Source of the DNA: Octopus bimaculoides
Taxonomy: Eukaryota
DNA: 63,721 nt
Reading direction: 5' to 3'
Assembly: GCF_001194135.2 (NCBI RefSeq)
Contig: NC_068990.1
Location: 87,822,314-87,886,034 of the forward strand
Positions 19,301-51,150 of the stretch are shown one piece after another (positions within the stretch are counted from its first letter, which is position 1; every line of letters begins with the position of its first letter). The notes beneath the pieces are model-generated. The model saw only the letters and a program-made list of their open reading frames with translations. It did not search any database and was not told the origin of the DNA. The position numbers and the translations under genes were made by a program.

Positions 19301-20455
19301 GCTCAGCTAACTTTATAGTTTTAATTTTTTTATTATTAATACATATATGACACTATTGTATAATTATATCAATAATTACAATTAGAAATTGTCATGAGCC
19401 AGCTGCATCCAAGTGTATTAACATTCGAAATTAGTCTAATGGCCCCACAGGGACCATAGAGATTATAAGGATTGATTCTATCGCATTTCTCCTTACATTT
19501 TGGGGATGACACAATCTCTCAGAGAAACCAAGTAAGTTACATAGCAGCGGACTCACCTGATTAATATGTAATGCGATGATTCAATATTCCTACAGTCGTA
19601 CATTCCATGATTTGGAGAAAAGTTCCTCAGCCCCACTAGTTAATAAGTAATTCGATGATTCAGCATTCGGAAACTGAGCTTTCATGATACTTTTTCTGTA
19701 ACATATCTTGTACGAAAACGGCAGACTGCTTACACCCACACATACACATACATATATATTTGTATTATAGTGCATTGTTGTACCATTCAAAACTGTTTAT
19801 TCTTTACATACATACATACATAGATACATACATAGATACATACATACATACATACAAACATACATACATACATATATACATACATACATACATACATATT
19901 TCGCTGTCACTCATAATCGAGTATGAATCAACAGAAAAGGATTTCTTTTTGCAACTACAATGAAGTAATTTTAACAATGTTGTTTTGCTTTTTCGTGGGG
20001 TTAAAGGCTAAAGCTGGTGCCACAATCGTGACCGTAGACATTACAAAATATTCTGGACAAAGATAGTGTAGTAGATCTGCGCTCTAGCTTCTCTTTTCTT
20101 GTTTCATCGAGTTCGACCCTGCAACATTTACTCATTTCTCAGTAGCACTTCTGTGTGTGTGTGTGTGTGTGTGTGTGTGTGTGTGTGTGTGTGTGTGTGT
20201 GTGTGTGTGTGTGTGTGTGTGTGTGTGTGTGTGTGTGTGTGTGTGTGTGTGAATATTAATCATTAGCAATAGAAGCAGTATTAATACTAAAATCTTTATA
20301 TCCAACGCAACATGGATGCCTTGTTAAAACACCGAATACTGCGTTATTGGCCTTGAGAGATCTTCTCTTATAAACGCTTGATGCATACAAGTGCGCACAT
20401 AGATAGTAGAGGACAAGAATCGTCTGTTATGGGCGCCAGAATTCCCCGTACCATA

Positions 20456-20688
20456 TGACTGTGGAGGCGCGTGGCTTAATGGTTAGGGAGTTGGACTCAT
20501 AATCGTAAGATTGTAGTTTCGATTCTTGGACCGGGTGATGCGTTGTGTTCTTGAACAAAGCACTTCATTTCACGTTTCTCCAGTCCACTCAGCTGGCAAA
20601 CACGAGTAATCTTGCGACGGACCGGTGTCCCAGGTGGGAAATATATACGCTATGGAAATCGGGAAACCGGCCCTTATGACTCTAGAAG
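20456..20688 (+). mobile_element. tRNA-derived SINE inserted into the left arm, near-perfect 8-bp TSD
   Basis: Head GTGGAGGCGCGTGGCTTAATGGTTAGG...GTTTCGATTC. Flanks are GTACCATA (20448-55) and GTATCATA (20689-96). Confidence 0.85.
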
Positions 20689-20734
20689 GTATCATACGAT
20701 CTCGGTTTACTGGACCTCATCTGTAGGAAGCGCC
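20689..20734 (-). ncRNA. Type I hammerhead ribozyme remnant (mutated core, split by SINE)
   Basis: Minus strand: GGCGC TTCCTA CAGATGA GGTC CAGTA AACC GAGA TCGTATGA T A C. The stem I 3' strand GGGGAA-TTCTG-GCGCC lies on the far side of the SINE. Confidence 0.65.
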
Positions 20735-21060
20735 ACTCACCGCACGTCAGTCAAATCTCACTGCCACCATATGCAGAATACCAGTATCTTTTCAGACACA
20801 GATGTCGCAAATAGCCAGCAGGCTTATTAAAAATTAATTATTTGAGACGGAAACAAGTAATAATACCAAACCGTAATCGTTATATCCAACTTAACAAGGA
20901 TACCTTGTTAGAAGATCGACTACCGTTTGGTATTAATACTGCTTCCCTCGTTAATAATTAATTTTTGATAAGCCTGCTGGCTATTTGCGATATCAGTGAC
21001 TGAAAAGATGCTGGTATTCTATATATTCTGGCAGCGAGATTTGACTGACATACGGTGACC

Positions 21061-21121
21061 GGCGCTTGATACTGATGAGGTCCAGTAGACTGAAATCGCA
21101 TGATATGGGAATTCTGATGCC
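21061..21121 (+). ncRNA. Type I hammerhead ribozyme motif
   Basis: GGCGC TTGATA [CTGATGA] GGTC-CAGTA-GACT [GAAA] TCGCATGA T A TGGGAA TTCTG ATGCC. The core is intact, stem II is 4 bp, stem III is near-palindromic and the triplet is AUA. Stem I is partly decayed in this copy. Confidence 0.75.
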
Positions 21122-21189
21122 CTTGACAGACGATTCTCGTCTGCTACAGTTTATGTGTGTGCTTTCATGCACCAAGCGTCTATAGATAG

Positions 21190-48286: not shown

Positions 48287-48715
48287 CCAGGCCATTCCAT
48301 AAGTTCTGTCCGAATCTTGAATAAAGAAAACAAGTGATCAAATGTTATATTTAATTGACATTTAATCATCAATGTACTTTCCCTGATTATCTTCCATCTA
48401 TTTACAAGCTTTTTAATCCCATCAATGTAAAACTCTTTTGGTTTCAAAGCGAAGAACTCGACCTCCTCCTGGCTTGCGAAAGTTATGTCCCCCAAATGAT
48501 TCTGTAAACTACAAAACAACTAGTAGTCTGAAGGAGCAAGGTCGGGAGAATAAGGTAGATGTGGAATTTTTTCCCAACCAAGCTCTTCGATCTTCTGCAA
48601 TGTGATCTTTGAAGCGTGGAGTCACGCATTGTCCTGATGAAACATCACTCCTTTTCGATTCACTAAAGCGGGTCTTTTTTTCTTCAATACTACACTTTCT
48701 GTACACCGCTTTATA
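48287..48715 (-). mobile_element. Mariner transposon 3' half with one terminus
   Basis: Minus strand: FHQDNA*LHASKITLQKIEELGWEKIPHLPYSPDLAPSDY*LFCSLQNHL...FFALKPKEFYIDGIKKLVNRW. Putative TIR CCAGGCCATTCCATAAG next to TA at 48285-86. Confidence 0.88.
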
Positions 48716-49932
48716 TTTTGCTCCTTAGTCGTATTTCCGGTATACGTGTGATAGCAGTTGTGTTACTTCCCCCCGTTTTTAGCTAGCATACAAGTTATTG
48801 TTAATTTTAATGAATTCAGAAGAGATTGTAATACCTCTGAGTGGCTCTTGCAGTTTTCGCGTGAAGCAAAATATCTGCGATGTTTATTTCACCATTCGTT
48901 CATTTAAATTAATTACTCTAAATTAAGTCTGTTTTTTTTCATTAAAAGTTACATTACTTATTCAACAAGCTTCTAACAGCATTGAGTAATTCAATAGCAC
49001 TTATTAACAACAGCGCCATAAATTGATTTATACACCTTATATCAACTTGTAATACGACAAACGAGATTTTCATGGAGAATTTAAACTTATTGCTGTTCTT
49101 TTATTTTGCAGACAAATATACACACAATTATTTCAGAAATTTCTTATTTATTTTAAAGGATAGATATTTCTTTCACATAAATTGCATACAATGCTTTAAT
49201 TTTTTTCGAATGAAAATTTTTTCAAAGTCCGTCCAGTTGCAATATACTCTGAACTATGTTAAGCTATTGTTTTCGAGTTGACCTTTATAGCAACCTATAT
49301 CCAATAAATCTTGTCGTAAATTTTTCTTGCCTCACTTCCAACCTAACCCTTCCTTTCGTCTGTCCGTCTACTAATATATCTACTTAATCTTTTTTCAGCT
49401 TGACCTTTGCCCCATTTAGTTTCCTACCTTGAATACAATCAAAACTTATTGAAATTTTTAACAAATTGTAAAACCCATCATACACCCTTATATTTTGACA
49501 AAGCGTCCCTCTATTTGAAAAACATTAGTAAAGACTCTTTCACTATTTGAAAAAGCGGACAGGTAAAACTTGAAGCTCCAGTCAGCTTGATGTTCATACT
49601 GAGGTTAATCGTGAATAGTCACCGAAGCATCTAGACGCCCCACAAGGTGATGTGTGTTAATTTTTATAGGTGGTTTGGTTGACAGCAATTCTTTTTGCTT
49701 GCTTAATTCGCATTGATGTAAAATCTATTTTGAGATGCATTTGTATGCGCGCTTGTGTATAAGTGTGTAAATGGGAATATGTACATATATATGAACAAGT
49801 ATGTATGTATATGTACATATTTGCATATAGATACATACATATGTGTGTGTGTGTGTGTGTGTGTGTGTGTGTGTGTGTGTGTGTGTGTGTGTGTGTATGC
49901 ATACATATATATGTATATATATTCACGTACGA

Positions 49933-50130
49933 AGCGTCGAGCTGGTAGAATCGTTAGCACGCCGGGCGAAATGCTTAGTGGTATTTCGTCTGTCTTTACG
50001 TTCTGAGTTCAAATTCCGCCGAGGTCGACTTTGCTTTTCATTCTCTCGGGGTCGATAAATTAAGTACCAGTTGCGTACTGGGGTCGACTGATCGACTGGC
50101 CGCCTTCCCCAAAAATTTCGGGCCTTGTGC
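49933..50130 (+). mobile_element. Full-length SINE family A with ~14-bp TSD
   Basis: Family A head and body. TATATATATTCACG occurs on both sides. Confidence 0.87.
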
Positions 50131-50685
50131 CTAGAGTAGAAAATATATATATTCACGCATACACATAGATAGATAGATAGATAGATGTTCCTCAAAGTAT
50201 CTCAAGGTTTATTTGTGTGGAGCATTTTTCGAAATTACTCAACAATAAACACTCACGCGCACACACGCACGCACGCACGCACACACACAAGCACGTGCGC
50301 ACACACCTATCATTCCTCTGCACATTCTATTCTTCGTATTGGTCAACAGGAAAAGATTTTACATCTTTTAAGATATCCGTTTGCATCTTCTTTTTTTTAT
50401 TTTAATTTTATTATTTACTTTTATCTTCACTTCCGGATTTGTCGCCGAGTCTGATCCCATCTGTGTGTCTGTTTGTTAAAATGGCAAAGAGAATCTATTA
50501 CGAAATTCGTTTTTATTGTATCATATTATATTATAACATATGTTAGAGACTGTGGAATGTAATAACTTCCTCCGCCGCCGACAAAGAAGACAGTCTAGTG
50601 TATTGGAATAATTCCACATGTTCTTTTCTTCCCCTCCACGCACCACCATTTAAAGGTGTTTATACAATTACATCAAACACGTAGC

Positions 50686-51150
50686 CTCCATGCGTCCAGT
50701 CCATATGAAAGGTCTCCCACTGTAAATGACGCAGTATTCGGTGCTCAAATAAGACATCCTGGTTAAGTTGGATACAAATATTACCTTTTGGTATTAATAC
50801 TGCTGCTGCTAAAAATTATTATTTTTATAAGCCTGTTAGCTATTTGTGACATCAGTGCCTAAACGGGCACTGAAAATTCATATATCGCTGGCAGAGAGAT
50901 TTGGCTGTATGCGGCGACCGGGAGTCTGCCACTGATAAGACGAGGTACGTCGAAATCACGTGATCTAGCAGCTCTCATACCCGTAGCAGACGATTTTCGC
51001 CTGTCAACAATATAAATGTGTGCGCTTTTATGCACCATGCACCCATATGGGAGGTCCTCTCAAGGCAAATAACGCAGTATTCAGCGCTTTAACAATACAT
51101 CCACGTTAAGTTGGCTATAAAGATTGCCCTTTTAGTATTTATACTCCTTC
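50686..51150 (+). mobile_element. Partial tandem (~1.35 monomers) of the 343-bp hammerhead-bearing repeat (family 1)
   Basis: ACGCAGTATTC at 50729 and 51072 (period 343). Shares GGTATTAATACTGC, ATAAGCCTG.T.GCTATTTG.GA.ATCAGTG and GGCAG.GAGATTTG with 20926-21060. Confidence 0.85.
50920..50976 (+). ncRNA. Type I hammerhead ribozyme motif (family 1 variant)
   Basis: GGGAG T CTGCCA [CTGATAA] GACG-AGGTA-CGTC [GAAA] TCACGTGA T C TAGCAG CTCTC. Perfect stem II, perfect palindromic stem III (ATCACGTGAT), AUC triplet, 10 of 11 stem I pairs. Core G8A. Confidence 0.78.

Follow-up and report, generated by a model that had tools for sequence, protein, structure and literature searches.

A 343-bp octopus repeat with a type I hammerhead-like motif: probable remnants of a retrozyme-like element associated with Penelope-like elements

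Does a short non-coding repeat in the genome of Octopus bimaculoides belong to a retrozyme, that is, to a family of small tandem monomers each carrying a hammerhead ribozyme? The question arises from a 63,721-nucleotide stretch of DNA (NCBI RefSeq assembly GCF_001194135.2, contig NC_068990.1, positions 87,822,314 to 87,886,034 of the forward strand), which was analysed at its full length and is referred to here as the window, with all coordinates counted from its first letter. A first reading of the letters alone, hereafter the original prediction, had noticed a 343-bp repeat near 20–21 kb and again near 51 kb, had assigned to it a canonical type I hammerhead, and had proposed a candidate cephalopod retrozyme. 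The analysis reported here supports a more qualified answer. With a probability of roughly 0.6, the copies in the window are three old, dead insertions of a ∼343-bp non-coding, non-autonomous, retrozyme-like element that was associated with Penelope-like elements (PLEs) and formerly carried a type I hammerhead. The retrozyme-type reading is favoured because the architecture of the motif, the compensatory changes in its helices, the unit size, the GC content and the non-coding nature of the unit all fit, while the association with PLEs is drawn from the anatomy of the insertions.

The repeat unit and its copies

With the monomer at 50729–51071 as query, BLAST returned three copies of the repeat at two loci (E values of 1e-38 to 1e-9), and an nhmmer profile search of the window recovered the same three (E values of 1e-103 to 2e-4). 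The claim that one repeat is shared by both places was therefore borne out, and neither search found a further copy elsewhere in the 63.7 kb. Locus 1 holds two copies. Copy A lies at 20252–20925 on the minus strand and, as delimited by BLAST, nhmmer and alignment, comprises ∼1.26 units (q6–q343 and then q1–q95, where q is the position in the query monomer), interrupted by a short interspersed nuclear element (SINE). Copy B, delimited by BLAST and nhmmer, begins at ∼20916/20921, ends at 21184 and lies on the plus strand, inverted relative to copy A; it comprises 0.77 of a unit (q54–q319). Locus 2 holds copy C at 50686–51164 on the plus strand, which was delimited by the same two programs and comprises ∼1.4 units, namely q300–q343, the full unit at 50729–51071, and q1–q93. 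Copies A and B are 78–83% identical to each other and 69–75% identical to copy C. Between the flanks of the two loci there is no similarity, which makes the insertions independent and rules out a segmental duplication of one locus.

The repeat period at locus 2 is 343 bp. At locus 1 it is 584 bp in the raw sequence and 341 bp after deletion of the 230-bp SINE and one 11-bp target-site duplication. The statement that 343 bp could be measured independently at both loci thus holds at 50729–51071 and has to be corrected at 20–21 kb. Tandem Repeats Finder did not report the 343-bp period, the copies being too few and too diverged. The GC content of the units is 39–43%, and both the 343-bp unit of copy C and the 341-bp unit of copy A without its SINE lie within the range of retrozymes lacking long terminal repeats (non-LTR retrozymes), which is 170–400 bp with a GC content below 45%. 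The longest open frame within the unit has 66 codons' worth of amino acids (66 aa) in antisense orientation, or 76 aa when the SINE is removed from copy A, and the unit thus has no coding capacity, as is typical of non-LTR retrozymes. Six runs of N lie between the two loci and none lies inside any copy; the motif described below is therefore unaffected by them, and their effect is confined to the apparent distance of ∼29.5 kb from one locus to the other. The nearest gap, at 51337–51503, begins 173 bp past the end of the copy C array.

The hammerhead motif in each copy

A hammerhead-like motif of type I is found at the identical unit position in all three copies, with the three helices in type I order and of canonical metazoan length. 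Helix I consists of 6 bp followed by a 5-nt bulge on the 3′ strand and a 5-bp closing stem, helix II consists of 4 bp capped by a 5-nt loop, and the helix III box, AUCRYRUGAU, is self-complementary.

In copy B the motif spans 21061–21121 on the plus strand, with CUGAUGA at 21072–21078, GAAA at 21092–21095 and predicted cleavage after A21105. This is the sole copy with a complete core (CUGAUGA, GAAA, A15.1–U16.1, and A at H17). Its helix I is damaged, with 4 of the 6 proximal and 4 of the 5 distal pairs left. The 10.1–11.1 pair, which is G–C in copies A and C, is here a G–U wobble, the C11.1–G12 CpG now being TpG; we counted the G10.1–C11.1 pair as present. In copy C the motif spans 50921–50981 on the plus strand, with CUGAUAA at 50932–50938 (G8 to A), GAAA at 50952–50955 and predicted cleavage after C50965. 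Helix II is perfect (GACG/CGUC), 5 of the 6 proximal pairs of helix I are present, and the helix III box AUCACGUGAU is a perfect palindrome. In copy A, on the minus strand, the motif is in two parts. The 5′ part at 20689–20734 contains the 5′ strand of helix I, CAGAUGA (U4 to A), helix II (GGUC/AACC), GAGA (A14 to G) and the helix III box, and the 3′ part at 20432–20447 contains the 3′ strand of helix I (GGGGAA), the bulge UUCUG and the closing stem strand GCGCC. The helices of copy A are good, and its defects are the two core substitutions together with the SINE.

This SINE is a 230-bp tRNA-like element at 20459–20688 on the plus strand, antisense within copy A, and was delimited by the gap in the alignment of copy A with copy B. 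It sits within helix III and splits the hammerhead of copy A at the cleavage site. Its target-site duplication, GTACCATATGA at 20448–20458 and GTATCATACGA at 20689–20699, is identical at 9 of 11 positions. Four diverged relatives (63–71% identity) are present in the window at 15137–15287 (plus), 11542–11680 (minus), 9980–10105 (plus) and 30766–30882 (plus). Members of this SINE family bear recognisable tRNA-like heads; ARAGORN called no tRNA, all SINE copies included, the heads being too degenerate.

No core defect is shared between copies, and a majority-rule consensus of the three copies has a full catalytic core. The original prediction had placed CUGANGA and GAAA in all three copies; the motif does occur at the same position in each, with the full core in copy B alone. 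The consensus that it had rebuilt turned out to be a chimera of the helices of copy A and the core of copy B, with a GACC strand found in neither of them, and it occurs in no copy. Nor is any copy a canonical type I hammerhead as it stands. Single changes at C3 or G8 are known to abolish cleavage of a PLE hammerhead. Since copy A has two core mutations and the SINE, copy C has the G8 to A change, and copy B cannot hold helix I, the three copies are predicted to be inactive or nearly so, and none is expected to self-cleave appreciably now.

Pairing, covariation and folding of the unit

The evidence that the motif is more than a chance likeness comes mainly from its base pairing. A loose type I descriptor matched copy B only in 63.7 kb searched on both strands. 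In shuffled windows the same descriptor gave 0.035 matches per window, with at least one match in 7 of 200 shuffles. In the alignment of the three motifs, 86.7% of the pair cells are paired, compared with 22–52% when the partners are slid by 1–3 columns, and 7 of the 20 pairs have changed on both sides yet still pair, compared with 0–1 in six slid controls. These comparisons carry a bias towards the observed structure, which was derived from the same sequences. Of the seven compensated pairs, three lie in helix I and three among the four of helix II, and another is a CG-to-UA exchange that keeps the palindrome of helix III. In shuffles the observed pairing values were reached 15 times in 500 (the seven-pair count) and 21 times in 500. 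Compensatory changes are thus present in the helices, at the low power that three sequences from two lineages allow. When RNAalifold was applied unguided to the whole units, helix II was recovered with its three compensatory pairs.

Sequence varies more at the helix positions than in the remainder of the unit (15 of 38 are identical in all three copies, compared with 131 of 200; p=0.003), yet these positions stay paired, which is as expected if pairing, and not sequence, was selected. Because 7 of 20 pairs kept pairing through changes on both sides, against 0–1 in the controls, it is very probable that the repeat family formerly possessed a functional ribozyme. Where the A/B lineage differs from that of copy C, the changes are read as having occurred in master copies while pairing was under selection. 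Defects of the core, being private to single copies, are read as neutral decay that followed insertion.

The copy C monomer folds well (z=−3.17 relative to dinucleotide shuffles, and z=−3.6 as a circle), and the copy A monomer with the SINE removed gives z=−0.6. In the fold of the unit alignment, columns 62–80 pair with 244–258, columns 162–170 pair with 198–205, and a hairpin that includes a compensated pair forms at 126–149. Each strand of helix I is paired in this fold with another part of the unit, and compensated pairs are among them. Such an alternative fold could mask the ribozyme.

Anatomy of the insertions

Copies A and B adjoin 5′ end to 5′ end at ∼20891–20925 with their 3′ ends facing outward. 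Rather than a simple array, locus 1 is therefore a partial tandem (A) joined head-to-head to an inverted, 5′-truncated copy (B), with a minus-strand copy abutting a plus-strand copy. A palindrome, TTAACAAGG-ATA-CCTTGTTA, occupies 20891–20910 on neither strand in particular; it is part of the unit, and the truncated 5′ ends of both copies meet at or beside it. An inverted partner is present at locus 1 and none is present at locus 2. A foldback element or miniature inverted-repeat transposable element was considered for the inverted A/B pair and ruled out, the unit at locus 2 having no inverted arm. The head-to-head arrangement also makes 20785–21010 a long, near-perfect inverted repeat, which would give a hairpin of ∼225 nt if transcribed; the match of this segment to plant microRNA-precursor models in Rfam is that of a generic hairpin only (MIR8562, 58 bits; gathering score 211).

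The arrays of copies A and C, each longer than one unit, stop at nearly the same unit position, q ∼97 and q ∼90, in what are two cases only. A defined start site of a reverse transcriptase (RT) would explain these shared 3′ ends. At three of the four outer ends a microsatellite follows immediately. The 3′ end of copy A adjoins (TG)n at 20152–20251, that of copy B adjoins (TAGG/TAGA)n at 21182–21304, and that of copy C adjoins GTGCATGCG...(TG)n, a (TG)n-like tract, at 51165–51230; this adjacency is weak evidence, since the window is very rich in microsatellites. The features of Penelope-like insertions are thus found together here: a partial tandem with a defined 3′ end, an adjacent inverted and 5′-truncated copy, and a bias towards microsatellites.

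Weighing the readings

Several results weigh against descent from a retrozyme-like, PLE-associated element. The first concerns the arrays, which have lengths of 1.26 and 1.4 units with one ribozyme motif per array in a given orientation, so that the tandem that defines retrozymes, at least two units each with a hammerhead, is found at neither locus. Solo copies, however, are a documented fraction of retrozyme families, and short arrays are therefore compatible with such descent. The second concerns Rfam. The hammerhead models of Rfam 15 gave no match in the whole window at the gathering threshold and none at E≤10 when stretches of 1.1 kb, 650 nt and 96 nt from both loci were searched; the Hammerhead_1 check suggested together with the original prediction thus returned nothing even at E≤10. 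An alignment of copy C to RAGATH-1-hammerhead scored a non-significant 13 bits (E=4.9; gathering score 56.3). The third concerns the fold. By nearest-neighbour energies the hammerhead is unfavourable in copy B (+3.1 kcal/mol, compared with a minimum free energy of −10.6) and in copy C (−2.0 kcal/mol, compared with −17.8), and only copy A (−11.8) and the chimeric consensus (−15.7) give it a reasonable energy. In the RNAalifold result both helix I strands pair preferentially with other segments, in part through compensated pairs, and the covariation statistics are weak because the three sequences amount to two independent lineages. The fourth concerns conservation. Conservation is no higher in the core than elsewhere in the unit (8 of 11 positions compared with 131 of 200, p=0.75), an outcome that the original prediction had itself named as one that would speak against it, and it is highest in blocks away from the ribozyme, such as ATAAGCCTGYTRGCTATTTGYGA and the hairpin at alignment columns ∼126–149. 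Lastly, no PLE coding remnant (RT or GIY-YIG) is present in the window, and the metagenome and protein collections that were searched yielded no further member of the family. When metagenomes were scanned with the 20-mer ATAAGCCTGYTRGCTATTTG, a conserved part of the unit outside the ribozyme, six contigs came back, all with chance matches of 20–23 bp, and a joint query of the six-frame open frames of all copies against 5.8 billion proteins, in which only copies at least ∼88% identical are detectable, returned no match. A profile of the antisense frames, searched against 1.84 billion representatives, gave two matches, which proved to be unrelated repetitive proteins whose repeats of 38 aa and 53 aa each align repeatedly to one short segment. 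Exact look-ups of four ORFs of the window in public assemblies also returned no record.

Some of these points would be expected if the likeness to a hammerhead were a coincidence within an unrelated dispersed repeat, such as an unclassified non-autonomous transposon or an old satellite, that was never active as a ribozyme. The core amounts to ∼11 fixed bases and is complete in only one of three copies, the Rfam models recognise none of them, conservation is higher in other parts of the unit than in the core, and the comparison with slid controls favours a structure that was derived from the tested sequences. We nevertheless regard a coincidence as unlikely. It would have to place three helices of the right length and order around both core strands, and to account for seven compensated pairs that include three of the four in helix II and the palindrome-keeping exchange in helix III. 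The descriptor expectation is only 0.035 per window, and the unit size, the composition and the insertion anatomy match hammerhead-bearing elements independently of the motif.

A rather improbable alternative, which shades into the favoured reading of a non-autonomous retrozyme-like element, is that the copies are pseudo-LTR or 3′-terminal fragments of an autonomous PLE that were heavily truncated at the 5′ end. PLE hammerheads do reside in pseudo-LTRs, PLE insertions show strong 5′ truncation, partial tandems and adjacent inverted copies, and many PLE hammerheads are single dispersed motifs or close pairs on opposite strands. Moreover, PLE pseudo-LTRs are the origin of retrozymes according to a 2026 preprint, so that the two categories intergrade. 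In both arrays, however, one unit directly follows another at a period of 341–343 bp with no open reading frame (ORF) sequence between them, and neither locus is adjoined by an RT or GIY-YIG remnant. The RT fragments that the window does contain match LINE-type proteins (of long interspersed nuclear elements), whose relatives carry an endonuclease domain of the AP type, and the motif is canonical, unlike the hammerheads of most metazoan PLEs, which are of a 'minimal' variant whose helix II is long.

Finally, a C/D-box small nucleolar RNA in the motif region of copy B, where 21067–21121 mimics the C/D′/C′/D layout (UGAUGA ... CUGA ... UGAUAU ... CUGA, with a terminal stem) and draws weak Rfam matches (SNORD18, 17.8 bits and E=0.24 in the 96-nt search; sR5, 14 bits), is rejected as highly improbable, because the scores are far under the gathering thresholds (41 and 40 bits) and the boxes, which are by-products of the hammerhead core (UGAUGA lies within CUGAUGA and CUGA within CUGAAA), are absent in copy C and damaged in copy A.

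The inference of a retrozyme family made in the original prediction therefore survives as the best explanation on the grounds of architecture, covariation, size, GC content and non-coding nature, and without the tandem arrangement and the Rfam match that it had led one to expect.

Proposed mechanism and significance

By analogy with published elements, we propose that master copies of the retrozyme-like element elsewhere in the genome would be transcribed as multimers. The hammerhead would cut these after AUA or AUC, probably acting as a dimer through its short self-complementary helix III, and the resulting monomers may be circularised by a host ligase. The RT and endonuclease of an autonomous PLE would then copy monomer RNA into new sites.

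It is possible, if doubtful, that the genome still harbours an active 343-nt family with true arrays and abundant self-cleaved circular RNAs, whose monomer would alternate between a fold in which the hammerhead is active and a conserved rod-like fold that sequesters both strands of helix I. The compensated alternative pairs in the RNAalifold result hint at such a switch. Viroids and plant retrozymes typically switch in this way, which is unusual among animal retrozymes.

If confirmed genome-wide, the element would add one more lineage, possibly a cephalopod, to the animals with hammerhead-bearing mini-retroelements; no description of a retrozyme from a cephalopod turned up in the searchable literature. 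The 20–21 kb locus is a compact natural link between a canonical type I hammerhead repeat and the PLE insertion signature, and it supports the current view that retrozymes are mobilised by, or derived from, PLEs. The element is of a type already known, its copies in the window are all dead, and the practical use of the window lies mainly in repeat annotation.

Other features of the window

Two 323-bp stretches at 1–323 and 45733–46055, both on the plus strand and 45.7 kb apart, are 99.1% identical and both lie beside (AAT)n. A recent duplication, a young repeat and an assembly artefact are all possible origins of the pair. A 34-bp tandem array of 8.1 copies with 96% matches (TAAACATGTTGCAAACATGATCTGTGAACAGTAT) occupies 36945–37220, and a 75-bp unit is present in two tandem copies with 93% matches at 43683–43831.

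Decayed fragments resembling RT of the LINE type lie at 7250–7612 (minus), 38404–38688 (minus) and 58094–58558 (plus). The first two have weak RVT_1 matches below the Pfam cutoff; the third, which has no Pfam match, is a candidate RT only on account of a YLDD motif. In a joint search, the proteins closest to the transposon fragments of the window were 35–50% identical and came from unrelated animals, and many of them have AP-endonuclease domains. There are also two unclassified families of dispersed repeats of ∼170–230 bp whose members are 76–87% identical, one at 13247–13468, 14738–14910, 25383–25612 and 49934–50129, and the other at 31198–31388, 31947–32123 and 35632–35833. One such unclassified repeat copy lies ∼550 bp upstream of the copy C locus.

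Assembly gaps start at 7884, 10730, 16535, 24022, 26557, 27323, 40627, 41938, 47458, 51337, 59638 and 62514, and most of them have a di- or tetranucleotide microsatellite immediately beside them, which suggests that a short-read assembly broke at simple repeats. The lengths of the gaps and the distances between features are for that reason only estimates.

Comparison with known systems

Type I hammerhead repeats have already been documented across invertebrates, molluscs included, and in the giant squid genome 235 matches to Rfam Hammerhead_1 (RF00163) have been reported (PMC6962438). The motif described here is of the same ribozyme class and permutation as that model, yet none of the three copies reaches E≤10 against it. 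In the canonical metazoan type I hammerhead, helices I and II measure 6 bp and 4 bp, respectively, helix III is short and ends in a small palindromic loop, and the ribozyme acts as a dimer in tandem transcripts (PMC4209133). The layout of the octopus motif is equal to it (PMC4209133).

Animal non-LTR retrozymes carry type I hammerheads in tandem monomers of ∼300 bp, arranged as dimers to multimers with a GC content below 45% (PMC7229834). They are known from cnidarians, mussels, amphibians and many other invertebrates, and their repeats measure 350–390 bp in Mytilus galloprovincialis and 330/350 bp in the satellite-2 of axolotl and newt (PMC7229834). The octopus repeat resembles them in its non-coding unit of ∼343 bp, its GC content below 45%, its one type I hammerhead per unit, its head-to-tail junctions and, in copy C, its well-folded monomer. 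It differs from them in that its arrays are 1.26–1.4 units long and never contain two ribozymes in tandem, every copy is mutated, and one locus has an inverted partner. The sequence of the 343-bp unit is unrelated to any published retrozyme sequence that could be compared.

Cephalopods carry PLEs. Most metazoan PLE hammerheads are 'minimal', with a helix II of 6–8 bp and a helix I of 2–5 bp (PMC4209133); the octopus motif, unlike them, is canonical and has no RT/GIY-YIG ORF attached. It resembles the hammerheads of PLE pseudo-LTRs in its type I topology, its palindromic helix III suited to dimers, and its variable sequence with compensatory changes (PMC4209133; PMC8557442). The insertion signature of PLEs consists of partial tandems, an inverted 5′-truncated copy at the 5′ end, and a bias towards microsatellites such as (CA)n (PMC8557442), and the octopus loci share with it the partial tandems, the adjacent inverted 5′-truncated copy and the microsatellite adjacency (PMC8557442). 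The RT of PLEs starts at defined internal sites of the template, and these are the positions at which genomic copies end (PMC11167929); the ends of arrays A and C at q ∼97 and ∼90 fit such defined start sites (PMC11167929).

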